Assembly (NCBI GenBank): GCA_052426225.1
Contig: JBNJNM010000008.1
Location: forward strand, 434,001 to 498,000
Origin: Zancudomyces culisetae HAW-14-8
Taxonomy: Eukaryota > Fungi > Kickxellomycota
Length of the DNA stretch: 64,000 nucleotides
Direction of reading: 5' to 3'
Below, in pieces: positions 1,280 through 24,955 of the stretch; the first letter of the stretch is position 1; every line of letters starts with the position of its first letter. The notes below the pieces were generated by a model. That model was given only the letters and a program-made list of their open reading frames with translations. It was not told where the DNA came from and made no database searches. The translations under genes and the position numbers were made by a program.

Positions 1280-1288
1280 ATCTAGTAT
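1280..1288 (-). promoter_or_regulatory. Putative self-priming primer-binding site
   Basis: Minus-strand ATACTAGAT starts 2 nt after the LTR end and is the exact complement of minus-strand ATCTAGTAT (1367-1359), ~30 nt downstream of the LTR TATA; there is no TGG tRNA-type PBS. Confidence 0.7.
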
Positions 1289-1520: not shown

Positions 1521-1660
1521 AAAAATCAAACTCGAATGCTAATAAAATTAAACATGTGAAAATTATTACGTAAGAAAAATTAATAAATAATGTGAATTTT
1601 CGGTAATGTTCTAGAATGTTTCCCAACATTCTAAACATTACTGCGGAATAAAATCAGATG

Positions 1661-1690
1661 ATTCTAGAACGTTTTCGAACATTCTAGAAT
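1661..1690. promoter_or_regulatory. Heat-shock element array in LTR U3
   Basis: aTTCt aGAAc gTTTt cGAAc aTTCt aGAAt: six alternating nGAAn units with one mismatch; a degenerate second copy lies at 1608-1636. Confidence 0.65.
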
Positions 1691-2214
1691 CAGTTCATGA
1701 CAGAGTTGATAAAAACTGCAAGTTTTTCGGCACTGACTGCACCTCCGTCACGGATTGCTTCGTGCATGAAGTAATCCAAAGGTCTTGTAACGGCTGATAA
1801 ACGGTACTGGATGTCATATAACATCGCATCAGTACGTTTATTGTCACCTGATAACTTGATGTTTTCCTCTGGTGGTTCATAATCCATGCCAGAGTTTCTT
1901 GGGATGGCTGCGTAAAACTTCTTGCGTTCGACATCTGCCAGTGGTGTCCAAAAGAAATCCTGTTCAACTGTTGGTAGCGCCTTTTGCAGTTTTGGATACA
2001 TGACCAGGTCAGATGGTGTTGGTCTGGGAACCACGAAGTTTTCAACTGAATCATCGTCGACTGCATCAACGATTGATGGAGCAGTGATGTTTGCTGAATC
2101 ACTGATTTCTGATACTGACATGTGATCATTTGGTGCGGTTTGTTTTTCAAGAGCTGATAATCTCTCCAAAATCTGTTGCAAAACTTCAACTGTAACGTTT
2201 GCATTTTGACTCAT
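1690..2214 (-). pseudogene. ORF1/gag-like protein of a probable DIRS/tyrosine-recombinase-type retroelement, truncated by the LTR insertion
   Basis: Motifs YPKLQKALP..EQDFF..PL.DVERKK...PRN.GMDY.PP and DAMLYDIQYRLSAVTRPLDYFMH resemble, from memory, a repetitive ORF family of early-diverging fungi. The last codons and stop (VMN*) are supplied by the LTR. Confidence 0.55.
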
Positions 2215-4271
2215 TATTGAAAATTTAACTAATGACTTTTATAAATACTATGTATTTTTTACAAGCTGGTTGAGTACCTAGCGAAAGAAAAGATGGTAAA
2301 GATTCATCAGGAAACAGGGGACATCAGTTTATATATGGTTTAAATTTATTTTATTTAGTTAGTTTTACTTATTTTATAAAAATTATACAGTGATGTCTGT
2401 CATTACACACATCATTACGTATAAAGTTTCTAAATTTAAACACTCTTTTTATCGATTTAATTTTTTACCAAATTTTAAGGTAATGGATTAATCGATAAAA
2501 ATAGTATCTAGGAAAGAATTTTCGATTTATAATAAAGATTGGTACACACATAATTGTATCTGGATAAGTGAAGCATAATCGACTTTTTCAAACCTCTCCA
2601 AACAAAATCATTTCGATCAAATGGTGGGCTATCAAGTAGGTGTATTTGACAACCATCATTCCCGCATCGCCTATCCTTATAGTCGTCATAGTTATATGGA
2701 TCTACAATTTTGCGACTAAACCCCTGTTTTCCGCCAAGCAATCTCAAAAATTCAAAATTTTGCATTTTTTAAGTGTAGATATACGTTTGTATCTGTGGTA
2801 ATTATTGAGTTATTCAAGGTTTTAGTTTTATGTCTTTTTTTAAAGAATATTAAACTTTTATGAACGTATACTATTTTAAATATTTAGGTTTGAAAAAAAC
2901 GCAAATATATATGTAATTTTATAAGATTGCATGGTGAGTCTCTCCAATTACAAAAAAGAACCTAGCGTGATATATATTTATGTACCAAGGGCTAATGTGT
3001 TTCATAATTTTCTAACTGCTATTCACCAACGCTAACTTGTTGGGTAAAAAGTCGAGATATTAAAAATATTAGCTAAAAATAAACAAATTCTTGTGGATAT
3101 CCACTTGGAAATCAGCATCTACTGACCCATCCGTTAGGTCATGCCTGATTCTCTCATTGTTCTAAATACTAATGTTTAATGTCCTGTTTATTGACTCATT
3201 CGCTAATATAATGTTATTATTCGAAAACCAAATCACGCATAAAATTGTTATTCTTATTCTTAAACTCCTAGATAAACACAAATGAATCTTAGTATTAAAT
3301 GATGAATTGTAAACTGAATATACGCGGTTTTTGTCTTTGCAACATCACATGACATCGTGGTGTATTAAAAAAAGTCTATTCAAAGTAAGAGTTGGAATGA
3401 CCCAAACTGACAGTTTTGTTATCATTTTTTATTCGCTTATTGTATATGTATACAAATTGTTATCTCTCATGCTCAGTTACATGAATGGTTAATATTATGC
3501 GTATTGGTTTTGACATTACACACCACTCAGCTTTAAAAAATACCTACAAAAAATACGAAAAGATAAAGGAGACGAAAAAAATAGGGAAAATGATACTTTT
3601 TTTGAACTGAACTTTCAAAAAAATTAAATTAAACAATACACATCTGCCTTATAATGCGTATAACACCTTTATCACATATATTTTGTGTGTAACTCTATTT
3701 GAATCTAGTCCTTTAGAATCCCATGTTTTATTTTTAAATTTTCCACTCTGCCCGGTTTAATATTCACTTTGTACTTTTTACTAACATTGACTTTTGGATG
3801 TAGTTTTTAGTTAAATCTGGATTAAAGTTGATTACAAAATATTGTAAGCAACATATCAAAACTGGATAAAAATAAATAAGCTTAAAAAACAATAACATTA
3901 TAATGACTATACATTAGATCTATTAATTATACCTACTAATAACATCATCCTATAGTGTCCTTATCATTACTAAACAACACTTTAAAACCTTTGTTTTAGC
4001 GCGTGAAATGTTGTTTACAATATCATAAGACACGGATAGTTGTTCGTGACTAAAAACGGATAATTATAATTGATGATGTTTGGTAAGTTAAGTAGCTAAG
4101 AAAGCAGGGGTAAACAAAGAGCAAGAATATCTTAGTGTTTAGATAAGTAATGGTTTTGGTAACACTAAGGGGTCACAAGTCTAGACATTATGACATTATG
4201 GCTTTGCAACGCTTTTTATTAGGTATGATTTGGTACTTAATGTCATTTTAAAGGTGTTTATTTTTTGAATG

Positions 4272-4366
4272 AAACTGCTTACAAAAAACTGCTTACAAAA
4301 AACTGCTTATGAAAAACTGCTTACAAAAAACTGCTTATGAAAAACTGCTTATGAAAAACTGCTTAC
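4272..4366 (+). repeat. 14-bp tandem array, ~7 units of AAACTGCTTA(CA/TG)AA
   Basis: Read directly; two unit variants interspersed. Confidence 0.9.
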
Positions 4367-5002
4367 TAATACAGTTTCTTAAACACTAAGAACTAAAATT
4401 TCTATTTTTGAAATCCAAATTTAAAAGCCACACTGATAGAATTATGAAACGTGGTGATGGTGATGATGGTGGTGATGGTGGTGGGGGTGGTGGTGGGGAT
4501 GGGGGGTTATCTAGTTTCTCATAAGCTAAGCATCTGTTATCTATGAACCCGATCATAGATGCTTATTTGAAGATCTAACTATGATTATTTTCTTGCTATT
4601 ATTCATATAATCTATTAAATGGTTTCTAGATTACCCCTGGTCTGTATTCAAAAACAAGTAAATAAAACAGACTGTGAGAAGTTTAGTAAGTGGCGCAATG
4701 GTATGTGACTAAAAGTCTGAGTGTTCGCCCCTTTTTCATTGATCAGCATTGCTTTTCAAATTTATCGAGAAATACATCGATAAAAAGGCTATCTGAATTA
4801 GTGATATGACTTATTAAGCTCATTTTAAAGTTGACTGAAAATTCATAAAGTTAAAGTGTTTAATTAACTGAAAATCAAGTTAAAGACAGAACACCAGATA
4901 GTATATAAAAACAAAGAATAAACCGCATGTGTATAGATTATTACTGTTGACTTGAAGTTATTGCTTAAGTAATAAATCATAAAAACTCTACATATTAAGA
5001 AA

Positions 5003-5530
5003 ATGGCAAAGGTGATGATTATTCCGTTCATGGTTTTGCTCATCAGATTGATGTTTACCACGGCTCAATCTAATACAAGCTTTGATATTGCTGCAGGAAA
5101 TGACATGGTGTTGGAGCAAACGGGTATGCAAGTTATTAATTCAACACGTCCTTTAGGGCGTAGCATAAACAATCAAGCTACTAAATGTTTGTACGAAAAA
5201 GTGGGTACCTGCATAAACAACTTTTGTAGTTCTTATACATCGTTTGGATCAATTCAGGTATGGAGAACAAAGCTTTATGCCTGGTCAGAAAATGGTGGAA
5301 GCTTGTCAAACATCGATTTCCAAAACTTTATACGTGATCGCTTGATAAATAACCCATATGGTACATGTACAACTTATTGCATGTACAATGCAAGCAACCC
5401 ATCAATAAGAGTATGCGTTAAAGTGACTGAGATGTTTGATTGTGCAGGTGATTGCAGTACCGGAATCGACTTTGGAGGCTGTAATGTACAGTGGAATCGT
5501 AGCGCAAATACTTGTGACTTTTATTCATGA
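5003..5530 (+). CDS. Small secreted cysteine-rich protein (175 aa, 10 Cys), copy 1
   Basis: ATG-started intronless ORF with higher GC than its flanks; hydrophobic signal peptide (MAKVMIIPFMVLLIRLMFTTA); Cys-free pro-like segment, then 10 Cys; TATATAAA at ~4902. Confidence 0.85.
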   Translation: MAKVMIIPFMVLLIRLMFTTAQSNTSFDIAAGNDMVLEQTGMQVINSTRPLGRSINNQATKCLYEKVGTCINNFCSSYTSFGSIQVWRTKLYAWSENGGSLSNIDFQNFIRDRLINNPYGTCTTYCMYNASNPSIRVCVKVTEMFDCAGDCSTGIDFGGCNVQWNRSANTCDFYS

Positions 5531-5821
5531 GAGCCTTTTATTTGAATATTAGGATTTAGATCGTGTAGGAGTGAAGTTCCTAAATGAATGGAAAGAAATT
5601 GGTTAGATAAATATTATGTAGGATTATTTTTTAATAGCTTTATGTGATATTTATTTAATAAATCCATTGAGAAAAAAAGCCAGTATATCATATTTAATAG
5701 TACTTCATACCCCCACTTTTTTAAAAGCTATTGCTTGATCAGTTTTGATTAGGAAGTAACTCATTTTGAGACTTGTAGTTTATCGTAAATAAATTGTTGA
5801 AAAGAATGTCATTTTATTAAC

Positions 5822-5954
5822 TAATACAGTATGATATAATAAATACAGTATTTAGAACATAATACAGTATGATACAATAAATACAATACAATACAGTATA
5901 ATACAACAAAATACACTATAATACAATAAATACAATACAATATAACATAATACA
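5822..5954 (+). repeat. Degenerate (ATACA)n-type low-complexity repeat, mirrored at ~20757-20890
   Basis: aatacagtatgatacaataaatacaatacaatacagtataatacaac... Confidence 0.7.
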
Positions 5955-8900
5955 TTTAACCAACTCCAGTGCACTAAATTAATTTTATTTGTTTTTACAA
6001 TTTAGGAATCGTGTTGATATTTCAATTATACAGCGGTGTAGTATACCAATTTTAACGCTTTCCCATCACTTATAAGCTAAACCCAAAAAAACATCCAATT
6101 CAACTAAATCAACTAAATCAAAACCAGAATATAGATACTTGACCTTTTATATGATAAATTAGCACCAACACTCAACTGCCATTTTGTGACAACCCCTGTG
6201 TTTTTTACAGGGTATTCAGCTTGTCTATTTATAATGTATTCAACAATACCATCAGTTAACTCGCATATGTGACCATTATCTGTGGCCTACAATATCTACT
6301 TTTCATCACAATATATATAGAGTTTATCGTTTGAGATCCGCAGTGGTACTTGTTTTCCACCTTTACCAAACTTCAAGATAAGCGTATAGATGTGATTAAT
6401 ACTTATTGCATCAGCGCCAAAGTACATTCCCTCAATATTATCGTAATTGCAAGTGTTAAGGATTTGAGTTGACCACCAGCTTTATACTTTAAAATAAATT
6501 GTAAATCCAAAAGTTTAGTATATCAAACGTATATCGTTTTTTAATTTAAAGCTTAATTCTAGTTTGTTTTACTTGCACTATTTGAATATTTAAAGACTTG
6601 AATGTTATTTTACTTTTTTTAACTACAGTTTCTAATAACGTGTATACAATAAACTCCTAAAAAAATGACAAAGTTCTTCGAAATCGTAGGTTGACTAAGC
6701 TATTCAAACAAATCAATAAATTACAATTAGCTACAACAAACATAGCGTGTGTTTTTTTAAAAAAGAGCTGAAAAGTCAATTTTGCTGTTGGTAACCTTGG
6801 TATTAGATATTTTGACAAAATCATATTCCAAGTTGAATTTCCTGTTTGACTTCGCACCTTTATGCGGCGAATGATGTTGTGTGAGTGCTGAGTTAGTAGA
6901 CAAACATCATTTCTTGTAGAAAGCTATCTATTACAGGTTTTACTATAGGTACTAATTATTCGGCGCAAACAGAAACGCTTCCTAAACCCAATAAATGTAA
7001 CAAATCCATTAATTTTGCCTTGAAATTTTCCATTTCACGGACATAAACATTCAAACTGAATATGAAACACCCTAACTAGCAGATATATTTCAGTTAATCT
7101 ATGATAAGTATAATATAAGCCTATTCGCAGAACATCATCCAAAGCTTTCTTTTAGGTTGCTGACTAGAAACACTCTGCGGAACCAGCACTTCCTATTTTT
7201 TACCAGGGAGTATCACAATCTACTGTTTTTGTTGCTACTACATTTTCATTTGTGTGCGGTTTATAATATGTACACATTAAATTATGTAATGCCATCTGTA
7301 ATAAAATCTAAACATTTTTCATTTAAATACACTGTGATGAAGTAAACGCAATAAATTGCTTACATAATCGCCGATACATGAAAAATGCTTTTTCTTAAGG
7401 GTCAAATTATTTTTATAGCCAAAATGGAGGTTAATATGAAAGAACACAATGTTTTTTTAAATGGCCGCTCATTTTCAGTAATATAATAGAATTACATCAT
7501 TCATTCTTAACGCAGTTATTTATCACAACTTTGAATACGGATTTTGTAAATAAACATCAGAAGTTAGGCACAAGGTCGTCAGTTTCCGGCGAATTTAAAA
7601 AAACATTGGACTTTGTAATTTATGGCTTGGTTGGATTGTCAAAATTATTAATGACTGTACAAAGTTGAAAAATACGCTAGATTCACGGCCCCACGCCCAT
7701 TGCGTGTTCAAAAAAGCACAAATAGTAAAAATTAAGTACAAATTGAAGTGTGAGTCGTACCCACATACTGTGGTGATGAATACCAAAATGTGTACCACGT
7801 TCATTATTTATCAAGATTTAAAAACATTTTTATTAAACGTTAAAGATCTTTGTTTCATATTATGGTCGCATAGCTCAAAATAAATTAAAAACATCAACTA
7901 CACATCTAGTGGATTTTCTAAGTACAGTGTTATTGGTGTTCATAAACTCAATCATGCTATAGTATTTTCGAACTGTTTCATCAGTACTATTGCTAATAAT
8001 ACATCAATATTTACCGAAAACTCGTATATTTTTTCCTTATCATAATTAATCTATTCCAGAGCATTATACAATTGTCATTGTTAAAACTACAATCATAAGC
8101 ATATGGTATAAAGGTCGAGTTATTTGAACTATTGAGTATAATTTAATCGTAATCAACGACATTTAGAATAATATCGTATTGGCAGCTATATCATAAATAA
8201 TTTTAAATTAAACTGCAACTTTTGACTCAACGAGAGTTTATAAGTCTGATCAACATAATCTACTTTGAATCACCCACCCGCATTTAAGTCCACTTTACTC
8301 TTCTCACCGTTCTCACTCAACTTGTGTGTTTATCAATTATGAAACCATCACTAATTATATATAGTATAGATGACTAAAATCGTGCACAACAATAACAACA
8401 AAATCTTCATTTATTTTGATTAAAAAAAGTCTTTTGTTAGAATCATAAGGTAAAAGTGACGTAAACTTATATTGATAAAGCGGAGAATAAAAACAAGAGC
8501 GAGCCACAATATTTATTTTTAGTGAGAATTTGCAAGCAATCTAATTAGTTAGAGATGTATGACGTCGATTTAGAGATCAATATTTTCTCGGTTTTATTTT
8601 AGCGTAGATTTGTAAGTGCCTAATCAGTTGCAACGTTATATTAGCGACTATACTGAATATCTTTACACAGTGTAAAATACTTTCACTCAAAATGAACATT
8701 ACTTTAAAATATCTTTTTTATTCATTTTCTTATATTTTTCTTGTATTTTTAATATTTTTAATTACCTATATTTTACAAATCGCGCATATACTCAATATTT
8801 CGATATTTTAATGATCTACAACATAAAATCGTAATATTTTGATTAAATTGATACTGAAAAAAATATATCCTAAATATCTATCTAACTAATTCTCATTTGT

Positions 8901-10194
8901 TCCCCTAGGAGCTCCATAATCCACCAGGCTTTGAATCAATTTAATTACTCGCTCAAAACCTGGGTTCTTTAGAATCATGCAAAAATCTACCTTCTACAAT
9001 CTTATTGGTCGTAAGGTGTGTTAATATGTTTGAGAGCGCCCACACACAAGCCACCCACTAACTGACCTTTTCAGTTATCAGATGCTTTCCCAGATTTTCT
9101 AAATATTCACAGGGCTATCTTGTCGCGCTTCGATAAACCTCTCTACATAATCCAGAACTTGTCTCTTCTTTCCTTTACTCTTGATCCTATTATGACTTTC
9201 TCAACCATTCCTTTTTCTCTAATTTTTACGAATTCATTTTAACTTGAATTTATGGCTTGCCGACCTGAATAAGAAATATTCTAGTAGTATTGGACTATAT
9301 AAATCAAATAGTTAAACTCCCCATATTGTTAAAAATAAATAGCAGCGATACTTTGTTAGCCGTTACTTGTGTCATAATTATAATAGATAATAATGATATA
9401 TCAAAAATAATCTGGCCCTCGAGTGCTAAGCGTAAATTTTTATAAAATTCACCTAGCGTTATTAATATTTACTAATTCACATTTCTAATGTTGTCAAACT
9501 CAAGTAGTTTATTCAACCTGGTACTCTTTTTAGTTTTAAATCGTTAAATTTGTAGAAATATACTATAGCTTATTTTCATATTTCCTATATTTGAACTATG
9601 TTATATATCACTAATTACATGGGTACTGAATTGAGATAAGTTGCTTACACCAATGTCTGTCTTCCTAGCTTCATTCCATTACTACTACCTGCCTGAGAAA
9701 GTGTATTCCATTCAAGCATCATTTATTTATGTAATTTAAAAGTTTGTTTAATTATTACCTATTTTTACTCAAAAAACCCATTAATGACAATATTCGACGG
9801 TGTTTGGTATACGTTTTTCAAAATAATAATAACAGTTGTTTGGATCCTTTACTGATATACTTATTATCATTATTTTCAAATGCTGGTTATCAGGGTATTT
9901 GAAATATATCATACAAATAATCAATATCTTTGAGAGTAACAGCACTCGGAATAACAGGGATTACCTAAAACGCTAACTGTGCAATACATCAAAGAGCTAA
10001 GAAAAGTGTACTACTCAATGTACCGATATCTAACTTTTTTCCAAAACGCATAAAGATTCATTTATAAAAACAACTACACAATAGAGTATATCCCTCAAAT
10101 AGTACTCGGTATTAACTACTCAGAAAATAGAATACACTAATCTATACAAGCTCTGCTAAACTAATTGATATCCCAACTAGAAACACTTATACAA

Positions 10195-13100
10195 TTATGA
10201 CCGCTTCACTTTTTTATATCCTCCAGCATTATATTCACAAGACTCACTTAAATCATCATAATCCAGTTCGTCTGCAACCTCCATGATAGATTCAATATAC
10301 TCGCTTGTATCAGCACCATGTTTAACCAACAAATTAACCATTTCCATGCTTTCATGTTCAATTGCCTCTTCGAGCCCATAATCCTTTTCCAGTACCAAAT
10401 TTGGATTTCTTTCTAGCAATAGTTTCAGCATTTCCAGGTTATTATTTTCACAGGTCTCTATCACGCCACTTTCGTTCCCTTCTCTTATTTTTGCTCCCTT
10501 TTCAAATAACAATTTCAAAATCTCCAGATCGTTGATTTCACAAGCCCAGAGAACATAATTGTATTCAATATGTTTAAGAGAGCGGGTATTTTTTAAAAGC
10601 AACTTTACTGCTTCTATGTTGTTTTTTTCAATAGCGTGTTGGAGTAAAGAAGAATCGTCACCAATTTCAGGACAACAGGCTAGTATTAACTGTAATGTTT
10701 CAATGTTGTCTAGATTAATATGCCTTAAAAAGTCTGAATTACTTTTATTTTTTGCATCATGCTGCAATAATAACCCAATCATTTCAATTTTTTTTGTTTC
10801 AAGTGCTATATTTACAATGTCTAGGTTACTTTCAATTATAAACCCATTATTCAAAAACACCTTCACCACATCAGTGTTTCCCAATTGTACCGCAATTCTC
10901 AGTATTTTATAAATATCATCGAGATTGAACTCGTAAGTTAAAAATAATCCCAAAATTTCAGTGTTGGCTACTATAACAGCTGCTTCCACTCCATCCAACA
11001 GATCACTATTATGGATGGGTTCGCCCTTTTCAAGCAAGGCTTTGGTAAGGCTGTATTCATCCAACCTGTCAGTGTTTTGTTGATCCAAATGATTGATAAT
11101 TTTTAATTTTCTTCCCTTTTTTATGTTTTTTTTATTCCATTTTTTCAATTTTCCTAAACCATCATAATATTCAAGAATCGTTTTTACCAAGTCTATATCC
11201 CCGATCAAACATACACGCTCTAATTGGTATCTACAAATGTTCCCTAGAATGGCATTATTATCCATAAGATATTTGAGAGTTCTCTTGAGACCTAATCTAC
11301 ACGCGATTCTGACTCCATTACGCTCTGGATCACTCAAGTCAACTCCACTTTCTACCAACAGTTTAACCATGTCAAAGTTACCCAATAAACATGCCATTTT
11401 AATACACTCGTATTCTGGATTCTTGGGCACTACACCACCATTCTTGATCCAATGTTTCAACACCTCAATCTTATTTGACCTACACGCTTCTTCAAACCCA
11501 TCGGACCCTCCTTTCAGTTTTGCACCTTTACTGATAAAGTAATCTATCCAGTCAATATCACCTACTTTAAATGCTGTTCTCAAAAACATGCTGTTATGTA
11601 AATCAATATCCGCTCCATTTTCTACTATTATTTTTAGTAGTTCAAAGTTCCGGTTTACCAATTCTGATTTTACTAGCTCGTAATGTCTATCATTTAACAC
11701 TACGTTTTTTTCATCCATGAACTCGTTAATTTCATTGTATTCAGTATCGTCGAATGTGCTTTGCAGGTCATTTTTAGCAATATATTTGATAATTTCAACC
11801 AAGCTATCATAACAAGCTCGTGCAGTCCGATTAACACGTGAGTCACCTGAAGGATTTGTAAGATATAAAACGCATACGTCTGTAATATTTTTCTTTCCAG
11901 AGTTTATAATTTCTACTAAATTTTCGTATAAACCAACATTTCCAAGAACACTTTCATGTTCAAAATATATGTTTGTATTATTTTGGTTGTAATGTTGGTT
12001 TTCTATAATAAGACATAGTATCGTTTTGTTAAATCTTAGCCTAGTTTTGTCTTTGAACTGTCCTTCTGATGTTTTTGGTTTAACATTAGCCTTAACCTTA
12101 ACCTTATCTTTATTTTTACTAAAGAGCTTTGTTAGACGTTCAGCTATTTCGTAATTTTTGATACTACACAGGTTTTCAATAACATTTTTAACCAATAGCC
12201 CAACAGAAGCACCATTTTCCAATAACAACTGTAACATATCTACATCATCATTTTCGCTTGCAATTCTTATTCCTTTAAATTCAGATGATTTTAAATTTAC
12301 TCCAGACTCGATAAGTAATTTGGCAGAAATGATATTCCTACTTTTCACTGCCTCCTCTAAACAGGAAATACTCGCTGTACTTGGATACTTATTAACAATC
12401 TCTTGTGCCAACTCGTAGTCATTCTTCTTTACAGCCGTTTTCAATGCAACCTCATCTAAATCTCCCTCAAGTCTATCACTGTTTTTTAAAAGAAATCTTA
12501 TTAGATCGACACTAATGCATCTGTACGCCATTAATGTCAATTTTCTTATATTTTCCGAATTTAACTCCACTGTGTAAAAGCACATCTTTACTGTATCTTC
12601 CTTACTATGGTGTATAGCTGCATCAAAAGCTATCTGTGCGTGTTTACTACTAGAGTAGTTATCTTTGAGATATGACACAATTTCTTTTCTATCCAATCTA
12701 ATTGCGTAATATGTACATATAATGTAAATCAACAAATCCATCTCTTCCTGATATCCATATTCCCAAACAAATTCATTCAATTCTTCATCAAGTGCAGCAC
12801 CCTTAGCGTTCACAATCGATTCTAGCACCCGAAAAGAGATTTTTGTGTGTCTTTCAAAATCCAAAACTCTTATTAAAAACTCAAGGTTGTTCAAAACGCA
12901 GCTTTCGAGTGCAGCCTCCAATATACAACAGATCATAAATTTGTTACCAATACATCTAATATCTGTCCCAACAGCACCAGCTATGTCTGGAGGAAACTCA
13001 AACTTGGTGTTACAGATATCTATCAGCATTTCTATGTCACTTTCCCCAGCGATATCAAACATTTCGCACATCAAAATGCCTGATACATCGATGTTGGTTA

Positions 13101-13626: not shown

Positions 13627-16600
13627 CGTGTCGTAAGTCGAATTATTGCTATTTCTTCTGTTCGACCTTATTAGTTTGTTAGTGTATTATAGTAAACAAT
13701 AAAGGTGAATAAGCTCCAAAATTAAAATCATGTTGGTTTTATATTACTTTCCTGATTTTTTTGATCTATTTATCCAAATTTTATACCAATTTCAATAGTC
13801 ATTTGCTGCGTAATTTGAAAAAATCAATATAGGTTTCAAATAATTGGGTACAATTCAGGATAAAGATATCAACCAGAAAAATTGGTCCAATTCCAATCCA
13901 GTAAATTATGCTTTTTTCGTGGATTTCAAGATGAATTAGCCAATGGGATCAAGATGGCTTCAAATTGACAACTCAAAAACTCATCCAGTTCCATTATCGC
14001 TCACCGAGCATAAACTGAGTATTACATCTGTCATTTTGGTCTGATTGTTTATTGAATGGTTCTTGGTGGAAATATATGTTGTGATTGTCAAAATAGTTTA
14101 TAGTTTGTTATTAGATGTGTATAGTACATTAATGATATGTATTAATTCAGTTTTGGTACTATGTTTCAAGTTATCAACACACGTTCAATCAGTTGATTAA
14201 ATTTTTACTGAGAAATAAAATAGATCTCAGTTCAGCAACCAAACAATTTTCAAATAGAATATATAAACATAAAGTTAGATAAAGTTTATGAGTTTAATAC
14301 TTGCGTACTTTTATCACTAGCTAAATGAATCCAACCCAAATTAAAAAAGAGTACCAGAAAAAATGTCAAATATAAAAATAAACATGATTCCTGCCAATGA
14401 GTTGACTAAAATATTTATTCTTCTGTTCAATATCAGAGTTTATTCAGTTGGCGGTGATATGTAATGCACCTAATACCCAAAAATGCAATATCAATTATTT
14501 CATATTGAGAATTATGTTTGAATCAACATAGAATCGGCTTTTTACTCTGATTTGTATGGATTTATGAGAAATATACATTCTAGCAATTAAATAAAGTATC
14601 AGGTTACTAGTACTATAGTGAATCTAAAAGGGTAATACAATAGGGTGCTAGAGTTGGAAATAGAGAATAGCTTGAGAAATATACATAAAATTTGATCCGA
14701 TCGGTGATAATATATGTGCGAATACCACGTTTATTGGTGAATATGGGATACTGAAGATGGATTTGACGCCTTGGATATTATGAATAATAAAAAAAGCAGT
14801 GCTCAACATATAGGCTGTAGCTGCAAATTTGTGAGGCAGCAGAATAGTTGAAAGGTATCAACAGGGTTATCTCTCAACAGACATGCAATTTAAATATAAA
14901 TTTACTACCGAAAAGATATAAAACTATACAAGAATACAATAAACCATTCGGCTATTTTAATTGGTGATCTCAGCTCCTTGATATATTGATACCCAGTATC
15001 AACTTGATTGTATATTTAGAAATGACCACAAGAATAGCTGATCTAAAAGGTTACTTCGAGTTGGCGAAACATAAAGTGGGAATATAAGTTAATAAGTTAA
15101 TAAAACTTTATAATGCTCTGGCATAGTGGTTAAAACTAAATACCGAGTAATGAAAATAATATAGATTTTGTGTGGATCATGTAAAAATAGAAAAAGTAAT
15201 AGATATTGGAACCAATTTTACAATGTTGTGTGGACCAGGGATGTAAAATATTAATTTTATATGTGATACTGATATAGTAAAGATAAACTTTATAAGGTAT
15301 GATTATCCATACAATAAGCGTATTATTCATACAAAATATCTGGGGTAAACTCATAATTTTGTTAACATTAATGAGTCTATGCTTAAAAAATACACTGGAA
15401 CGTGAAACTACTAATATTCTTGAATTGAGTAACGTAACTTTGAGTACATGGTGGAAAAAAAAAAGCAGAAAATGAAATACTTGAGATTATGGATTTACTT
15501 GTAGTGGTTAACCTAACAACACATAAGCAGATATACGATATTTTATAAATAATATATGAGTGGGTGCATAGGGAATATTAATCATTTAATTTCAAAAACA
15601 GATGTAAAATCATTAAACATTAACAGTTTATTTATAAAAAATGCAACTAAATCAGAAATATTGAGATTCTAAAACACTTGTTTTGTCGGGGCTAGAAAAT
15701 AATAGAATGGTTGGAATATGGGTACAATATTTGTATAAAAGAAGGATATGGAATTAATAATCCGAGAAAATGAAATTACCTGGTACAAAAATGTGTATCG
15801 CTGAGAGAAAACAAGAAAACTGTTTTTGGCTTCTTTCAGTTGGACAGGAAAACACCCAATTAGTTAAATTATTAATCAAAAATAGAATCAACATCTCGAG
15901 CATAATGTTATAAATTGGGCTGCAAAGCGATTAAGTTGGAAATTGTATCTTTATGAATCCATGATAGTTGTAGGTTCTAGCAACAAACCAGTAAAAGTTA
16001 ATAATCCAGTATGTAAACAGAGTGGCCATAGAGTTGCACAGGTATTGATAAAAGATAGTAACTGGTTTTTTTCTCCTTTGTGGGTAGAATAACTGAGCTT
16101 AAATGTTTTTTCAGAAGGATGCTATGTGAATACATGGGCTAGTTATCGTCACATTGACTACCCATTAAAGCTATTAAACCTATTAAACTCATGAAAACCA
16201 CTAGTGTACGAAACACCTGAATCAAATAACTAACCAAGCAGTTTCTGGAAATCATATCAATACAATTGATTTATTGAGCAAAAATTTACTATTATCAATA
16301 TACTAGCGGGGTCACTATCTATTAGTGAGATACTTTATATAACCACTTCATCAGATACTACATGTCACTATATCGCAAAATCTCTGATTAACTTGTTAAG
16401 TTTTTGTTTGCAGTGCTAATTTCTTTTATTGAAGACGTTTGAAAGCCTAATACAATTTACTAGATTTTTCTCCACCGTTTCACCCTATATCCCATTTTCT
16501 TTTTTTTTTGTTTAATTCAATTTCGCTGTAATCTATTGACTACCAACATGAGATTGAAAGTTAATAGTAAAGGTAGCAGAAAAAATAAATAGAAAAAGAT

Positions 16601-19600
16601 AAATAAGAATTAGAACTTTAGACAGATATGAAACGTGTCAAAATTTCTAAACAATATCTATATAGTATTCTGCTGCTTTAAAGAATGTAAACTAATAGGG
16701 ATATTTTTTTTTCGTGGTATTGTTGTTTTTATTCACTTGTTACTTTATTCATTGCTCACGCACTTTATGAAATCATCAAGCACATATATATTGATTTTGA
16801 GCTTGCTAAAGTTCACATTAGACAGCTCAATAAGCAGTCTATTAAGCTTGTCCACTTTTTGTGAATTTTTCTTATTTGACCTTCTTGCACCTCATTTAAT
16901 TAATTTCTAACCCAGTCTTCAGGGGACGCTTCCACTTCAATTATGACTTTTTGAGCACACAGGTGTTTCCTCAATAGACATGCTAGGTAAAAGCATGTAT
17001 CATTTTTACCATTTAATCCAGAGCCCCATATATCATATGTCATATGCCCAATTACACAGAGTGTCCCAATGATTAACCACACTCTCTTTTCTATAATACT
17101 ATTATCATAACTGTATCTGGTTCCATTATAACTCTGTATAGTGTTGCTGTGCAATGCATTCAACTCAACTCAACTCATCATGGAATTTGGTCGTTTGTTG
17201 AGCCTATTGTGTAAGTTGTAATTTGATATTGATATAGCCAAAAATGTCCTCAAGTACGTGTGCTTCCAATATCCACACTTCTTGCATTTCAACTTTTTAC
17301 CACTGGTTCAAAACCTCTACGGGAACCACAATTCTCATATTTAGATTCAATAATAATTTTCTGGTTTTCCCAGTAATTTGCGGGCAAAACCCCAATTTCT
17401 TGAAGGATTGATCTACAATAGATACACTATCTATCTATATGACCATACTAATTCAAGATAATTTTAAACACTAAATGTTTTGTCGCTTTGATACGTATGC
17501 AGTTTATAATTTAGATAGATTTAGGTTCGTTGTAGCCCCCAACCTATTTCAACAATACAAATTGTTGAACTAACCAAAAAAAAAGTAAACTAAAACTACA
17601 AGGGAAAAAAAGACCAGCTTAACATAACACCAACGGCCATAAAATTAATACTACAAAAAAATTTAGACATATACTTATAACATTGTTCCCATCGTATTAC
17701 CATAATGAACTTTTGTTTCTAAAATGAAACTAGAAATCAGTGACTTTGTATATATATATTTTTGCTAATACCACTAACTTTTAGTCTACTCACAACTTGA
17801 TATGTATATTGACGTAATGGTTTGGTTGCACTTTTTATTTTTTTCAGTATCAATTTCAATCAAAATATTACGATTTTATGTTGTAGATCGTTAAAATATC
17901 GAAATGCTGAGTATATGCGCGATTTGTAAAATATAGGTAATTAAAAATATTAAAAATACAAGAAAAATATAAGAAAATGAATAAAAAAGATATTTTAAAG
18001 TAATGTTCATTTTGAGTGAAAGTATTTTACACTGTGTAAAGATATTCAGTATAGTCGCTAATATAACGTTGCAACTGATTAGGCACTTACAAATCTACAC
18101 TAAAATAAAACCGAGAAAATATTGATCTCTAAATCGACGTGATACATCTCTAACTAATTAGATTGCTTGCAAATTCTCACTAAAAATAAATATTGTGGCT
18201 CGCTCTTGTTTTTATTCTCCGCTTTATCAATATAAGTTTACGTCACTTTTACCTTATGATTCTAACAAAAGACTTTTTTTAATCAAAATAAATGAAGATT
18301 TTGTTGTTATTGTTGTACACGATTTTAGTCATCTATACTATATATAATTAGTGATGGTTTCATAATTGATAAACACACATGTTGAGTGAGAACGGTGAGA
18401 AGAGTAAAGTGGACTTAAATGCGGGTGGGTGATTCAAAGTAGATTATGTTGATCAGACTTATAAACTCTCGTTGAGTCAAAAGTTGCAGTTTAATTTAAA
18501 ATTATTTATGATATAGCTGCCAATACGATATTATTCTAAATGTCGTTGATTACGATTAAATTATACTCAATAGTTCAAATAACTCGACCTTTATACCATA
18601 TGCTTATGATTGTAGTTTTAACAATGACAATTGTATAATGCTCTGGAATAGATTAATTATGATAAGGAAAAAATATACGAGTTTTCGGTAAATATTGATG
18701 TATTATTAGCAATAGTACTGATGAAACAGTTCGAAAATACTATAGCATGATTGAGTTTATGAACACCAATAACACTGTACTTAGAAAATCCACTAGATGT
18801 GTAGTTGATGTTTTTAATTTATTTTGAGCTATGCGACCATAATATGAAACAAAGATCTTTAACGTTTAATAAAAATGTTTTTAAATCTTGATAAATAATG
18901 AACGTGGTACACATTTTGGTATTCATCACCACAGTATGTGGGTACGACTCACGCTTCAATTTGTACTTAATTTTTACTATTTGTGCTTTTTTGAACACGC
19001 AATGGGCGTGGGGCCGTGAATCTAGCGTATTTTTCAACTTTGTACAGTCATTAATAATTTTGACAATCCAACCAAGCCATAAATTACAAAGTCCAATGTT
19101 TTTTTAAATTCGCCGGAAACTGACGACCTTGTGCCTAACTTCTGATGTTTATTTACAAAATCCGTATTCAAAGTTGTGATAAATAACTGCGTTAAGAATG
19201 AATGATGTAATTCTATTATATTACTGAAAATGAGCGGCCATTTAAAAAAACATTGTGTTCTTTCATATTAACCTCCATTTTGGCTATAAAAATAATTTGA
19301 CCCTTAAGAAAAAGCATTTTTCATGTATCGGCGATTATGTAAGCAATTTATTGCGTTTACTTCATCACAGTGCATTTAAATGAAAAATGTTTAGATTTTA
19401 CTACAGATGGCATTACATAATTTAATGTGTACATATTATAAACCGCACACAAATGAAAATGTAGTAGCAACAAAAACAGTAGATTGTGATACTCCCTGGT
19501 AAAAAATAGGAAGTGCTGGTTCCGCAGAGTGTTTCTAGTCAGCAACCTAAAAGAAAGCTTTGGATGATGTTCTGCGAATAGGCTTATATTATACTTATCA

Positions 19601-20220
19601 TAGATTAACTAAAATATATCTGCTAGTTAGGGTGTTTCATATTCAGTTTGAATGTTTATGTCCGTGAAATGGAAAATTTCAAGGCAAAATTAATGGATTT
19701 GTTACATTTATTAGGTTTAGGAAGCGTTTCTGTTTGCGCCGAATAATTAGTACCTATAGTAAAACCTGTACTAGATAGCTTTCTACAAGAAATGATGTTT
19801 GTCTACTAACTCAGCACTCACACAACATCATTCGCCGCATAAAGGTGCGAAGTCAAACAGGAAATTCAACTTGGAATATGATTTTGTCAAAATATCTAAT
19901 ACCAAGGTTACCAACAGCAAAATTGACTTTTCAGCTCTTTTTTAAAAAAACACACGCTATGTTTGTTGTAGCTAATTGTAATTTATTGATTTGTTTGAAT
20001 AGCTTAGTCAACCTACGATTTCGAAGAGCTTTGTCATTTTTTTAGGAGTTTATTGTATACACGTTATTAGAAACTGTAGTTAAAAAAAGTAAAATAACAT
20101 TCAAGTCTTTAAATATTCAAATAGTGCAAGTAAAACAAACTAGAATTAAGCTTTAAATTAAAAAACGATATACGTTTGATATACTAAACTTTTGGATTTA
20201 CAGTTTATTATAAAGTATAA

Positions 20221-20580
20221 AGCTGGTGGTCAACTCAAATCCTTAACGCTTGCAATTACGATACTATTGAGGGAATGTACTTTGGCGCTGATGCAATAAG
20301 TATTAATCACATCTATACGCTTATCTTGAAGTTTGGTAAAGGTGGAAAACAAGTACCACTGCGGATCTCAAACGATAAACTCTATATATATTGTGATGAA
20401 AAGTAGATATTGTAGGCCACAGATAATGGTCACATATGCGAGTTAACTGATGGTATTGTTGAATAAATTATAAATAGACAAGCTGAATACCCTGTAAAAA
20501 ACACAGGGGTTGTCACAAAATGACAGTTGAGTGTTGGTGCTAATTTATCATATAAAAGGTCAAGTATCTATATTCTGGTT
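20221..20580 (+). pseudogene. Degenerate ankyrin-like gene remnant inside the IR arm (mirror at ~6122-6481, minus strand)
   Basis: Manual translation ...ATDNGHICELTDGIVEYIINRQAEYP...KWQLSVGANLS with in-frame stops; two extra stops (TAC>TAA, TGG>TGA) occur only in the right arm. Confidence 0.35.
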
Positions 20581-21180
20581 TTGATTTAGTTGATTTAGTT
20601 GATTTAGTTGATTTGAATGTTTTTTTGGGTTTAGCTTATAAGTGATGGGAAAGCGTTAAAATTGGTATACTACACCACTGTATAATTGAAATATCAACAC
20701 GATTCCTAAATTGTAAAAACAAATAAAATTAATTTAGTGTACTGGAGTTGGTTAAATGTATTATGTTATATTGTATTGTATTTATTGTATTATACTGTAT
20801 TTTGTTGTATTATACTGTATTGTATTGTATTTATTGTATCATACTGTATTATGTTCTAAATACTGTATTTATTATATCATACTGTATTAGTTAATAAAAT
20901 GACATTCTTTCCAACAATTTATTTACGATAAACTACAAGTCTCAAAATGAGTTACTTCCTAATCAAAACTGATCAAGCAATAGCTTTTAAAAAAGTGGGG
21001 GTATGAAGTACTATTAAATATGATATACTGGCTTTTTTTCTCAATGGATTTATTAAATAAATATCACATAAAGCTATTAAAAAATAATCCTACATAATAT
21101 TTATCTAACCAATTTCTTTCCATTCGCTTAGGAACTTCATTCCTACACAAACTAAATCCTAATATTCAAATAAAAGGCTC

Positions 21181-21708
21181 TCATGAATAAAAGTCACAAG
21201 TATTTGCGCTACGATTCCACTGTACATTACAGCCTCCAAAGTCGATTCCGGTACTGCAATCACCTGCACAATCAAACATCTCAGTCACTTTAACGCATAC
21301 TCTTATTGATGGGTTGCTTGCATTGTACATGCAATAAGTTGTACATGTACCATATGGGTTATTTATCAAGCGATCACGTATAAAGTTTTGGAAATCGATG
21401 TTTGACAAGCTTCCACCATTTTCTGACCATGCATAAAGCTTTGTTCTCCATACCTGAATTGATCCAAACGATGTATAAGAACTACAAAAGTTGTTTATGC
21501 AGGTACCCACTTTTTCGTACAAACATTTAGTAGCTTGATTGTTTATGCTACGCCCTAAAGGACGTGTTGAATTAATAACTTGCATACCCGTTTGCTCCAA
21601 CACCATGTCATTTCCTGCAGCAATATCAAAGCTTGTATTAGATTGAGCCGTGGTAAACATCAATCTGATGAGCAAAACCATGAACGGAATAATCATCACC
21701 TTTGCCAT
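21181..21708 (-). CDS. Small secreted cysteine-rich protein (175 aa), copy 2
   Basis: Protein identical to copy 1; one synonymous difference seen (Ala GCC at 5281 vs GCA at 21430). Confidence 0.85.
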   Translation of the reverse strand: MAKVMIIPFMVLLIRLMFTTAQSNTSFDIAAGNDMVLEQTGMQVINSTRPLGRSINNQATKCLYEKVGTCINNFCSSYTSFGSIQVWRTKLYAWSENGGSLSNIDFQNFIRDRLINNPYGTCTTYCMYNASNPSIRVCVKVTEMFDCAGDCSTGIDFGGCNVQWNRSANTCDFYS

Positions 21709-22338
21709 TTTCTTAATATGTAGAGTTTTTATGATTTATTACTTAAGCAATAACTTCAAGTCAACAGTAATAATCTATACACATGCGGTTTATTCTTTGT
21801 TTTTATATACTATCTGGTGTTCTGTCTTTAACTTGATTTTCAGTTAATTAAACACTTTAACTTTATGAATTTTCAGTCAACTTTAAAATGAGCTTAATAA
21901 ATCATATCACTAATTCAGATAGCCTTTTTATCGATGTATTTCTCGATAAATTTGAAAAGCAATGCTGATCAATGAAAAAGGGGCGAACACTCAGACTTTT
22001 AGTCACATACCATTGCGCCACTTACTAAACTTCTCACAGTCTGTTTTATTTACTTGTTTTTGAATACAGACCAGGGGTAATCTAGAAACCATCTAATAGA
22101 TTATATGAATAATAGCAAGAAAATAATCATAGTTAGATCTTCAAATAAGCATCTATGATCGGGTTCATAGATAACAGACGCTTAGCTTATGAGAAACTAG
22201 ATAACCCCCCACCCCTACCACCATCACCATCACCATCACCATCACCATCACCACGTTTCATAATTCTATCAGTGTGGCTTTTAAATTTGGATTTCAAAAA
22301 TAGAAATTTTAGTTCTTAGTGTTTAAGAAACTGTATTA

Positions 22339-22433
22339 GTAAGCAGTTTTTCATAAGCAGTTTTTCATAAGCAGTTTTTTGTAAGCAGTTTTTCATAAGC
22401 AGTTTTTTGTAAGCAGTTTTTTGTAAGCAGTTT
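22339..22433 (-). repeat. 14-bp tandem array, mirror copy in the right arm
   Basis: Same unit number and variant order as 4272-4366. Confidence 0.9.
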
Positions 22434-24955
22434 CATTCAAAAAATAAACACCTTTAAAATGACATTAAGTACCAAATCATACCTAATAAAAAGCGTTGCA
22501 AAGCCATAATGTCATAATGTCTAGACTTGTGACCCCTTAGTGTTACCAAAACCATTACTTATCTAAACACTAAGATATTCTTGCTCTTTGTTTACCCCTG
22601 CTTTCTTAGCTACTTAACTTACCAAACATCATCAATTATAATTATCCGTTTTTAGTCACGAACAACTATCCGTGTCTTATGATATTGTAAATAACATTTC
22701 ACGCGCTAAAACAAAGGTTTTAAAGTGTTGTTTAGTAATGATAAGGACACTATAGGATGATGTTATTAGTAGGTATAATTAATAGATCTAATGTATAGTC
22801 ATTATAATGTTATTGTTTTTTAAGCTTATTTATTTTTATCCAGTTTTGATATGTTGCTTACAATATTTTGTAATCAGCTTTAATCCAGATTTAACTAAAA
22901 ACTACATTCAAAAGTCAATGTTAGTAAAAAGTACAAAGTGAATATTAAACCGGGCAGAGTGGAAAATTTAAAAATAAAACATGGGATTCTAAAGGACTAG
23001 ATTCAAATAGAGTTACACACAAAATATATGTGATAAAGGTGTTATACGCATTATAAGGCAGATATGTATTGTTTAATTTAATTTTTTTGAAAGTTCAGTT
23101 CAAAAAAAGTATCATTTTCCCTATTTTTTTCGTCTCCTTTATCTTTTCGTATTTTTTGTAGGTATTTTTTAAAGCTGAGTGGTGTGTAATGTCAAAACCA
23201 ATACGCATAATATTAACCATTCATGTAACTGAGCATGAGAGATAACAATTTGTATACATATACAATAAGCGAATAAAAAATGATAACAAAACTGTCAGTT
23301 TGGGTCATTCCAACTCTTACTTTGAATAGACTTTTTTTAATACACCACGATGTCATGTGATGTTGCAAAGACAAAAACCGCGTATATTCAGTTTACAATT
23401 CATCATTTAATACTAAGATTCATTTGTGTTTATCTAGGAGTTTAAGAATAAGAATAACAATTTTATGCGTGATTTGGTTTTCGAATAATAACACATTATA
23501 CTAGCGAATGAGTCAATAAACAGGACATTAAACATTAATATTTAGAACCATGAGAGAATCAGGCATGACCTAACGGATGGGTCAGTAGATGCTGATTTCC
23601 AAATGGATATCCACAAGAATTTGTTTATTTTTAGCTAATATTTTTAATATCTCGACTTTTTACCCAACAAGTTAGTGTTGATGAGTAGCAGTTAGAAAAT
23701 TATGAAAACACATTAGCCCTTGGTACATAAATATATATCACGCTAGGTTCTTTTTTGTAATTGGAGAGGACTCACCATGCAATCTTATAAAATTACATAT
23801 ATATTTGTCGTTTTTTTCAAACCTAAATATTTAAAATAATATACGTTCATAAAAGTTTAATATTCTTTAAAAGAAGACATAAAACTAAAAACCTTGAATA
23901 ACTCAATAATTACCACAGATACAAACGTATATCTACACTTAAAAAATGCAAAATTTTGAATTTTTGAGATTGCTTGGCGGAAAACAGGGGTTTAGTCGCA
24001 AAATTGTAGATCCATATAACTATGACGACTATAAGGATAGGCGATGCGGGAATGATGGTTGTCAAATACACCTACTTTGATAGCCCACCATTTGATCGAA
24101 ATGATTTTGTTTGGAGAGGTTTGAAAAAGTCGATTATGAACTCACACAACGAATACTGCTTACAGGCACCACCATCATACAATAACGTTATTTATAAAGA
24201 GAAATCATAAAGAAAACTCTTGTGTTTTTAGTACTGATCAATGCTACATGCTCAGTGGCCTTGAACTAGGGTTTTTTTTATGTTTGGTATATTTTAATAA
24301 CTCGTGGTTCACTAGATTGACAGTTCGACAAAAAAACTTGCTCTGAATATTTTTTTTAGTTAGTAATAAAAGAAAATTACTGAGATGTTAAAACAATATT
24401 ATTAAACTTCAACTTTTATAACAGGATTTATAGTACTATTATTTTTAATGAGCCTTTACTATGTTGGTATTCAGCTATTATTTTTTTGAATTATTAATTT
24501 AATAATGAACATTTCGTAAAACCGCAAAAGTATTAACTCTACTCTGTTCCTCTAAGAACTCCATAACCACCTAGCATTAGTTCAGGAAAAATATATTTTA
24601 TTTAAAGAAAGAAAGTGGTGGATCAAAAGACATGTACCGCGTGTATTATTCAAACCAAAAGTATAGCCACTTGTATATTTTTTTAATTTGTAAAAACTGA
24701 GGTTTTGGTCATTATTAACTGTCATCCACTCTAGCCATCATTTTCCTACCCTATTTCTGTTCAATGTGTTTCATCATAGTGAGATACAAAGTATTCTATT
24801 AATGGTGAAAATTAATTTGTTTTCCAGCTGCTATTAACACATAGATTACAAACATATCACCGATCGGTCGGATATATCAATTACATTTTTATACTTATTT
24901 GTAGTGAAAAGTTAATTAAACATCAACACATAGATCAAAAAAGTCATTAACAACT

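Follow-up and report, generated by a model that had tools for sequence, protein, structure and literature searches.

Zancudomyces culisetae, an early-diverging fungal symbiont of the mosquito gut whose reproduction is apparently mostly clonal, carries on contig 8 of isolate HAW-14-8 what is very probably a large, old, gene-bearing chromosomal palindrome, which arose by inverted segmental duplication and whose arms have been kept alike by arm-to-arm gene conversion. The window analyzed here is the whole stretch of 64,000 nucleotides at positions 434,001-498,000 of contig JBNJNM010000008.1 (C8) in the HiFi assembly (48x) of this isolate; positions written as C8:n refer to the whole contig, and all others to the window. 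The palindrome spans about 55-65 kb in total and consists of two high-identity arms of about 17.5 kb each (22-23 kb including an outer pair of phospholipase-D (PLD) genes), which flank a spacer of 8,970 bp. It is located mid-contig, 434 kb into a contig of 2.15 Mb, and no telomere visibly adjoins it. The structure is of a known kind, a palindrome maintained by gene conversion, ordinary though clean; it is neither a mobile element nor a proven switch.

Anatomy of the palindrome

The features of the locus are as follows (strand in brackets where one applies).

1..2573 (-), right-hand part of a retrotransposon nest that interrupts the left arm; the whole nest is C8:425709-436573, equal to window -8291..2573
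2568..2573, CATAAT, the 6-bp target-site duplication, right copy; left copy at C8:425703-425708
2574..8865, inner segment of the left arm (the entire left arm in the initial annotation), delimited by self-BLAST
5003..5530 (+), secreted-type gene of 175 aa with hydrophobic N-terminus and 10 Cys, orphan, left copy
8866..17835, spacer of unique sequence, 8,970 bp
10195..13626 (-), gene for an ankyrin-repeat protein of 1,143 aa, with at least 40 copies in its family
17836..35324, portion of the right arm with high identity to the left arm, 17,489 bp without interruption
21181..21708 (-), secreted-type gene of 175 aa, right copy
24133..24138, empty target site in the right arm, counterpart of the insertion point of the nest in the left arm
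24956..26071 (-), trypsin-like gene, right copy; left copy at C8:423793-424890
27726..28163 (-), small ORF of 145 aa, present in both arms, with 82-85% amino acid conservation in a paralogous block on C21
30334..33900 (-), Nup133, 1,188 aa, right copy; left copy at C8:415968-419534
35946..39971 (+), phospholipase-D gene (PLD1/Spo14-type), 1,341 aa, right paralogue

Self-BLAST confirmed the inverted repeat reported in the initial annotation: positions 2574-8865 match 24138-17836 with 98.84% identity over 6,309 columns, including 50 mismatches and 14 gap openings. The description of the locus as a 21.6-kb cassette with 6.3-kb arms was not upheld, as these repeats are the inner part only of arms that continue beyond the nest. 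On its far side, C8:414831-425708 is the reverse complement of window positions 35037-24133 (99.13% identity over 10,905 nt). Over the whole of the ~17.5 kb, the arms differ at 137 of 17,336 columns, which corresponds to 99.2% identity and 0.79% divergence. The inner boundaries of the inverted repeat are sharp, as are those of the 17.5-kb block, and diverged collinear arm homology reaches further outward to window position 39985, where the homology of the PLD pair stops.

The nest measures 10.9 kb and is composed of a DIRS-like outer element, with RT, RNase H and Dam-like methyltransferase domains and 277-nt inverted termini, and of a chromovirus with 412-nt LTRs that is held inside it. The outer "end" at position 2574 is the edge of this nest, and therefore the apparent 6.3-kb left arm is an artefact of transposon insertion; a young insertion hid two thirds of the palindrome. 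It had been observed that the locus contained no transposase or recombinase and no target-site duplication at its outer ends; the absence of a recombinase stands, while the sole duplication, CATAAT, is the nest's own. Repeat ends that coincide with a transposon edge deserve comparison with the other arm.

The arms share the block order PLD, Nup133, small ORF, trypsin-like gene, secreted cysteine-rich gene and ~3 kb of non-coding DNA. Every arm gene is intact in both copies. The left PLD paralogue (C8:408593-412777) encodes 1,394 aa. The two arm copies of Nup133, which differ by six synonymous changes and one non-synonymous change, are the only two copies in the genome. The right copy of the trypsin-like gene has a serine at the position of the catalytic histidine, and the 145-aa ORF has no Pfam match at E<=10. 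As annotated, the secreted-type ORF of 175 aa is intact in both arms and each copy is oriented toward the spacer; the genome holds just these two copies, whose proteins are identical and whose coding sequences differ at one synonymous change. Between HAW-14-8 and a second isolate, COL-18-3, the ORF differs at 2 of 528 nt, and its flanks are 96.3-97.4% identical. The secreted protein matched no Pfam entry at E<=10 and no toxin family or other family, and an exhaustive HMMER search of 1.84 billion representatives returned only the COL-18-3 orthologue and the protein P0131. The latter was rejected as a spurious relative: it is BLTP1-like with an exactly repeated 37-residue unit, the match is weak per unit and does not preserve the cysteines, and the repetition inflates the score. 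In the ESM Atlas, the COL-18-3 orthologue has a poor model (pLDDT 0.38) with meaningless structural neighbours (TM of ~0.31).

The spacer was correctly described as a unique core with one intact gene, its one long ORF being that of the ankyrin protein. The F-box attributed to this protein was absent from the Pfam results for residues 1-200 at E<=10, and the whole protein matches only ankyrin families. The gene is intact and constrained between the isolates (pN/pS 0.40). Its full-length paralogues, at least 40, are dispersed over the genome, none of them beside a copy of the secreted gene, and the recurrent neighbour of the family is the trypsin-like gene family. In paralogous copies on C9 (95.5%) and C21 (74%), the sequence runs uninterrupted across the right junction (17835|17836); the left junction (8865|8866) is a derived breakpoint with no evident microhomology beyond 0-2 bp. 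No coding signature was found in the ~3-kb conserved inner arm and right spacer (16.9-20.6 kb), because the C21 paralogue matched equally in all six frames, and Rfam and tRNA scans found no RNA genes in window positions 1-41000. Inverted-repeat regional centromeres of the S. pombe and C. tropicalis type have a gene-free central core and inverted repeats that lack essential genes. This interpretation was rejected for the present locus, whose spacer has an intact constrained gene and whose arms hold Nup133 and PLD.

Gene conversion between the arms

Three tracts of high identity stand out within the arms and the PLD pair.

29392..32448, tract of 3,057 bp with zero arm differences, covering the 3' two-thirds of Nup133 and ~0.9 kb downstream
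37050..39034, main conversion tract within the PLD pair, at least 99% identity between flanks of 27-80% identity
~39400-39715, second, short PLD conversion tract

About 24 differences would be expected in the 3,057-bp tract (P ~3e-11), and a tract of such length was reached in 0 of 20,000 simulations. It takes in the ~0.9 kb of non-coding DNA as well as synonymous sites, and we interpret it as the product of recent gene conversion; an assembler that over-corrects near-identical repeats might in principle also generate such a stretch. The PLD pair, an old layer at the outside of the palindrome, is a mosaic: the proteins are 99% identical over residues ~350-980 (~630 residues), and 23%, 65%, 49%, and 77% identical in other segments. 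In the diverged segments, the paralogues nevertheless resemble each other more than either resembles Smittium PLDs. No PLD orthologues surfaced in a word search of COL-18-3, where they are probably fragmented.

The comparison with COL-18-3, an independent Illumina assembly, provides a third line of evidence. Contig L030 of this isolate spans the same left junction and contig L029 spans the right junction, contigs of this shortness yielding both junction types from either spacer orientation. The derived left junction is thus common to both isolates. In the inner 1 kb, the HAW-14-8 arms (L and R) differ at 7 sites (0.68%), the COL-18-3 arms (Lo and Ro) at 36 sites (3.5%), and L and Lo at 29 sites, where L029 could partly be a collapsed consensus of several copies. 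Eleven sites show the pattern L=R versus Lo=Ro, compared with 1+1 sites of the orthology type, and across 6.5 kb, 101 differences from COL-18-3 are common to L and R, which differ from each other at 57 sites. The HAW-14-8 arms are thus more alike than orthologous arms across isolates, though the left junction predates the split, and these site patterns point to concerted evolution. The divergence between the isolates varies along the sequence (0.6% to 4.6% per 500 bp), which makes simple distances a weaker argument than the site patterns. Taken with the zero-difference tract and the mosaic PLD pair, the concerted evolution relative to the second isolate bears out the early suggestion of a self-homogenising locus. 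The COL-18-3 spacer is structurally different: the overlap of L029 and L030 (14731-16625) shows only 93.4% identity, and each contig terminates in retroelement sequence. RIP-like or repeat-specific mutation was also considered and was rejected. The arm differences comprise 92 transitions vs. 28 transversions (19 transitions at CpG-type sites), the unique spacer between isolates shows 110 vs. 53 (20 at CpG-type sites), and the two spectra are not significantly different (P=0.11 and 0.72).

The locus very probably began with an inverted segmental duplication, by which a second, mirror-image copy of the block came to lie downstream of a member of the ankyrin family and the new junction 8865|8866 was formed. 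Non-crossover homologous recombination between the arms has since repeatedly overwritten one arm by the other, and this conversion holds ~17.5 kb per arm at the present identity; the PLD N-terminus, the promoter region and some other segments escaped conversion and diverged. The retrotransposon nest was inserted in the left arm later, leaving the apparent 6.3-kb arm. We infer one single ancient duplication instead of two steps. The origin may also have been two-step, with an old inverted PLD pair followed by a later duplication, as would be compatible with the ~1-2 kb without alignable homology that separates the 17.5-kb high-identity block from the PLD block. Arm recombination may occasionally be resolved as a crossover, and the spacer would then flip.

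Alternative explanations

A recent static inverted segmental duplication, too young to diverge and without gene conversion, would agree with an arm divergence of just 0.79%, with the background-like mutation spectrum, and with the sharp boundaries of the 17.5-kb block. This explanation is nevertheless very improbable, since the breakpoint 8865|8866 is also present in COL-18-3, where the arms differ by 3.5% in the inner 1 kb as against 0.68% in HAW-14-8, the HAW-14-8 arms share 11 changes against both COL-18-3 arms, the zero-difference tract is hardly compatible with chance, and the PLD pair alternates between identical and strongly diverged segments. The plain inverted segmental duplication that had been offered as the conservative reading was therefore right as to category, but the structure is some three times the size, is old, and has not remained static. 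Chimeric long reads can produce palindromes, and the locus might then be an assembly artefact, such as a foldback join within a chimera or an inverted haplotig misjoin; its probability is slight in the extreme, as a 9-kb unique spacer separates the arms amid a 2.15-Mb contig, the arms carry 137 differences and a 10.9-kb insertion in one of them only, and both arm-spacer junctions recur in the independent Illumina assembly of another isolate. In the flip-flop MAT loci of methylotrophic yeasts (Ogataea, Komagataella), inverted repeats of ~2 kb surround the MAT genes, the segment inverts by homologous recombination, and one copy sits in silencing chromatin. The present locus is similar in that inverted repeats bracket a segment, with an inversion that we only infer, and is different in having no ~2-kb repeats, no MAT genes, and no placement in silencing chromatin. 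With a length of 17 kb and 99% identity, the inverted repeats are good crossover substrates, as a programmed switch in which spacer inversion alters expression would need; we still regard such a switch as highly improbable. The gene families found in the arms and spacer are ankyrin, trypsin-like, Nup133, and PLD, plus orphan ORFs, with no site-specific recombinase and no mating-type-like gene among them; the arms and spacer contain no dedicated recombinase ORF, the only nearby recombination enzymes being those of the nest retroelements, and the locus is mid-contig with no telomere visibly adjoining. Each gene is fully contained in an arm or in the spacer and has flanks of kilobase scale, so that a flip would alter no gene or promoter junction. 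There is no evidence for a programmed function of the palindrome.

The two remaining alternatives concern its content. A two-part effector locus, in which the arms supply a secreted cysteine-rich toxin and the spacer supplies its intracellular F-box/ankyrin partner or immunity protein, could account for the conservation of the secreted ORF between isolates and for its maintenance as two identical copies. The pairing was contradicted by the distribution of its supposed partner, which is one of at least 40 scattered full-length paralogues, has no F-box, and recurrently adjoins the trypsin-like family and not the secreted gene; together with a secreted protein that matches no toxin family, nor any other, this leaves the toxin-and-partner proposal with little more than a nominal chance, similar to that of the switch. 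Foldback-type and composite non-autonomous transposable elements are characterized by terminal inverted repeats, and part of the arm sequence recurs elsewhere in the genome. The element proposed on this ground is the least probable of all the explanations and was rejected: its supposed ends are edges of a retrotransposon insertion, the homology runs past both of them, and the arms carry the single-locus housekeeping genes Nup133 and PLD. A genome-wide search for further arm copies, also proposed initially, did recover partial paralogous blocks on C9 and C21, but these differ in extent and have no common ends, and no further whole units were found.

Relation to known palindromes and implications

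The palindrome maintained by conversion matches the gene-converting palindromes of the Y/X type in its long near-identical inverted arms, unique spacer, concerted evolution, and discrete tracts. Like this locus, the mammalian Y/X palindromes (P1-P8, X) have gene-bearing inverted arms around a unique spacer, arm identity of >99% upheld by multi-kilobase arm-to-arm conversion tracts, and persistence over evolutionary time, and rare spacer inversions have been documented in P6 (PMC3723533; PMC8981503). In contrast to them, the Zancudomyces locus is autosomal-type, its arms are smaller (17-23 kb) and less identical (99.2% vs. >99.9%) and carry housekeeping instead of testis-type genes, and one arm has a young retrotransposon nest. 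The long inverted repeats of Candida albicans often contain ORFs, serve as recombination substrates, and cause inversions and other rearrangements (PMC6591007); they are likewise fungal genomic inverted duplications with ORFs that provide substrates for homologous recombination. The Zancudomyces arms are much longer than most of these repeats, and while rearrangements were observed directly in C. albicans, in Zancudomyces it is conversion that is documented and inversion that is presumed.

Palindromes are not mentioned in the paper describing the HiFi assembly, and the phenomenon therefore appears to be undescribed for Harpellales. By analogy, Z. culisetae might keep gene-bearing palindromes genome-wide as self-repair devices that preserve or co-evolve gene pairs through intrachromosomal conversion, with spacers flipping at measurable frequency, although we consider so general a role unlikely. 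In that case, the two Nup133 copies, the only ones in the genome, would be among the gene pairs here, along with the orphan secreted protein, and spacer flipping would create structural polymorphism between isolates. Palindromes are open to genome-wide study from existing data (HiFi 48x, ONT 844x), and, because the nest is only 6.3 kb from the spacer, this locus is convenient for measuring spacer inversion with ordinary HiFi reads.

Structure and gene content of the inverted repeat

Zancudomyces culisetae is a Harpellales fungus that lives in mosquito guts. The PacBio-HiFi assembly of isolate HAW-14-8 comprises 26 contigs totalling 27.18 Mb, including two designated as mitochondrial, and the paper describing it does not use the word palindrome or mention inverted duplications (PMC12611240). 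Read coverage in that study is 48x for HiFi and 844x for ONT, and it also produced RNA-seq data. The genome searched here comprised 27.09 Mb in 25 contigs. To the window, 40 kb on its left were added and the entire stretch was self-aligned; coordinates on its contig, C8, equal the window number plus 434000, and window numbers of zero or below lie left of the window.

In self-BLAST, 2574-8865 aligned with 24138-17836 at 98.84% identity (6,309 columns, 50 mismatches, 14 gap openings), which reproduced to the base the inverted repeat described in the initial annotation. The outer ends given there are not true ends: on the far side of a 10.9-kb insertion the left arm continues, with C8:414831-425708 being the reverse complement of window 35037-24133 (99.13% over 10,905 nt, self-alignment). 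Since the arm continues past the insertion and an empty site is present in the right arm (24133-24138), the 6.3-kb arm originally recognized is the portion of the left arm between a young insertion and the spacer. The features are as follows.

C8:414509-442865 minus the nest: left high-identity arm, ~17.5 kb (self-alignment)
Window 17836-35324: right high-identity arm, ~17.5 kb (self-alignment)
Window 8866-17835: spacer between the inner arm edges, 8,970 bp
C8:425709-436573 (window -8291..2573): retrotransposon nest splitting the left arm, 10.9 kb
Window 24956-26071: trypsin-like gene; left copy at C8:423793-424890

Across 17,336 aligned columns the two arms show 120 mismatches and 17 indels (0.79%). 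Outward of them, 1-2 kb without alignable homology are followed by a collinear inverted pair of phospholipase-D (PLD) genes, whose homology ends at window 39985 and C8:408580, 14 bp after the stop codon; the total span is ~65 kb, or ~54.5 kb once the nest is subtracted. Both arms contain genes for PLD (1,394 and 1,341 aa), Nup133 (1,188 aa in both arms) and a secreted protein, a trypsin-like gene and a 145-aa ORF, every copy being intact, and the only two Nup133 copies in the genome both lie at this palindrome. The locus is a well-supported, real palindrome of an already known kind. Minisatellites with 14/42-nt and 49-nt units were also found in the arms (4272-4366 / 22339-22433 and 5822-5954 / 20757-20889), the second of which is ~0.6 kb longer in isolate COL-18-3.

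The outer element of the nest is DIRS-like, because it encodes reverse transcriptase, RNase H and Dam-like methyltransferase domains and is bounded by 277-nt inverted termini. Nested inside it is a chromodomain element of the Ty3 type, whose 412-nt LTRs share 99.76% identity. The hexamer CATAAT was found at each of the two nest edges, and the spacer lies only 6.3 kb from the nest edge.

Homogenization of the arms

Gene conversion between the arms is supported at the sequence level by three independent lines, namely an identical tract, a mosaic PLD pair and a second isolate, and the suggestion that the locus is self-homogenising was thereby borne out. The tract, 3,057 bp at window 29392-32448 and its partner, contains no arm difference where ~24 were expected (Poisson P ~3e-11; length reached in 0 of 20,000 simulations). 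Selection was ruled out as its cause because ~0.9 kb of the tract is non-coding and many of the sites it covers are synonymous.

The PLD proteins are 99% identical at residues ~350-980 and 93% identical at ~1130-1250, and elsewhere show 23%, 65%, 49% and 77% identity by segment; in the DNA, a ~2-kb tract of at least 99% identity is flanked by stretches of 27-80%. Even where they have diverged, the two remain far more similar to one another than to the PLDs of Smittium or Coemansia (25-45%), so the duplication is lineage-specific yet old, exceeding the age of the isolate split many times over. Synonymous divergence between the isolates is 3.05%.

The second isolate, COL-18-3, was represented by an Illumina assembly (GCA_001969505.1), in which contig L030 (LSSK01000586) joins the spacer to 1 kb of arm over the same left junction, and contig L029 (LSSK01000198) joins arm and spacer over the right one. 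In the inner kilobase, the COL-18-3 arms differ at 36 sites, the HAW-14-8 arms at 7, and the HAW-14-8 left arm and its COL-18-3 counterpart at 29; 11 sites group the arms by isolate, and each orthology-type pattern occurs at one site. Over 6.5 kb, both HAW-14-8 arms share 101 differences from the COL-18-3 contig and differ mutually at 57 sites. The shared left junction, together with arms that are mutually closest, amounts to concerted evolution: the duplication predates the isolate split, yet the arms are each other's closest relatives.

Arm differences are mostly transitions, about one fifth of which fall at CpG-type sites. Because between-isolate differences in the unique spacer have the same spectrum, a repeat-directed mutation process was rejected, and the arm differences reflect ordinary mutation. 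The COL-18-3 spacer occurs in two versions over window 14731-16625 (on L029 and L030), which are only 93.4% identical and each end in a retroelement, so this spacer is either rearranged or locally duplicated.

Origin of the palindrome and orientation of the spacer

Several observations bear on which arm-spacer junction is derived. A partial copy on contig 9, subtelomeric and 95.5% identical, is unbroken across the right junction (window 20940 to 14121), as is a paralogous block of 74% identity on contig 21. The right arm and spacer contain a trypsin-like gene followed by an ankyrin gene on the same strand, an order found at ten other loci, and the leftmost 1.3 kb of the spacer resemble sequence found 3' of other ankyrin paralogues. 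Together these show that the right junction is ancestral and that 8865|8866 is the breakpoint produced by the inverted duplication. Contig 9 in fact carries two partial arm-plus-spacer copies (C9:1335433-1342154 and C9:1375754-1379260; 95.5-96.8% identical, 40 kb apart), which lie amid retroelements ~55 kb from a contig end with irregular TG-rich telomere-like repeats. The palindrome locus has thus also seeded a subtelomeric copy.

A single duplication is the favoured, inferred origin of the PLD pair and the 17.5-kb layer alike; conversion would then have spared the N-terminal and promoter parts of PLD, possibly because selection favoured their divergence. Alternatively, the two layers may have arisen in separate steps. 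An assembly artefact was rejected, since a 9-kb unique spacer separates the arms, 137 differences and a one-sided 10.9-kb insertion distinguish them, the locus lies mid-contig, and an independent assembly contains both junctions. The foldback-like mobile element once proposed was likewise discarded: what looked like repeat ends results from the insertion, housekeeping genes lie in the arms, and the genome has no second complete copy of the unit. Nor did the idea of a secreted toxin with an intracellular partner survive, as the secreted protein has no Pfam family and no functional link to the ankyrin gene.

Neither a recombinase nor a mating-type gene occurs at the locus. A spacer flip would alter no gene, because every gene is wholly inside one arm or the spacer, and the junction contigs are identical whichever way the spacer faces. 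Known crossover substrates include long, 99%-identical inverted repeats. Inversions have been documented for the Y palindrome P6, where they are rare (PMC3723533), and for inverted repeats of C. albicans (PMC6591007), which makes occasional flipping of the spacer plausible.

Secreted, trypsin-like and ankyrin genes

Each arm contains an intact 175-aa ORF oriented toward the spacer, and the two proteins are identical, their coding sequences differing by one synonymous change, in agreement with the twin inward-pointing secreted genes of the initial annotation. Its N-terminus is hydrophobic, and ten cysteines and four N-glycosylation sequons are visible by eye. The genome encodes no paralogue, and the protein's sole relative in two large protein searches was the COL-18-3 orthologue, a hypothetical protein of Z. 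culisetae; a second match in the exhaustive one of these was dismissed as a repeat artefact. Between isolates the coding sequence is 99.6% identical, whereas its flanks are 96.3-97.4% identical (P=0.05), so the ORF probably represents a genuine orphan gene under constraint. Immediately downstream lies a 107-nt dispersed repeat (window 5572-5678 and 21033-21146) with at least 30 copies genome-wide at ~80% identity, one of them exactly at the border of a contig-9 partial arm copy; the repeat is possibly a short non-autonomous element.

The trypsin-like protein has TAASC in place of TAAHC at the catalytic-histidine motif, retains the Asp and GDSG-Ser motifs, and ends in a hydrophobic tail; four residue changes and one in-frame indel of a 6-residue repeat separate the copies in the two arms. 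Ten of 22 close trypsin-like paralogues have a same-strand ankyrin ORF at a distance of 0.6-2.3 kb, and the two families appear to have been co-amplified. Examples of such pairs are window 24956-26116 and 10195-13626, C20:41923-47163, C21:2153659-2158902, C9:447102-452149 and C23:220141-225801.

As originally noted, the spacer has a single intact gene: its one long ORF encodes a 1,143-aa ankyrin-repeat protein, in which the F-box also reported was not detected. The family has at least 40 full-length paralogues (49-61% identity), and a between-isolate pN/pS of 0.40 indicates moderate constraint on this member. The COL-18-3 orthologue has an internal stop within the first ~117 codons (L030:3439-3790), and the protein annotated there begins later (1,026 aa). 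Two pairs of same-length ankyrin paralogues with near-equal scores, C21:2069687-2073046(-)/C21:2097874-2101233(+) and C20:43750-47163/C21:2153659-2157072, one of them inverted and 25 kb apart, may represent additional recent duplications or palindromes.
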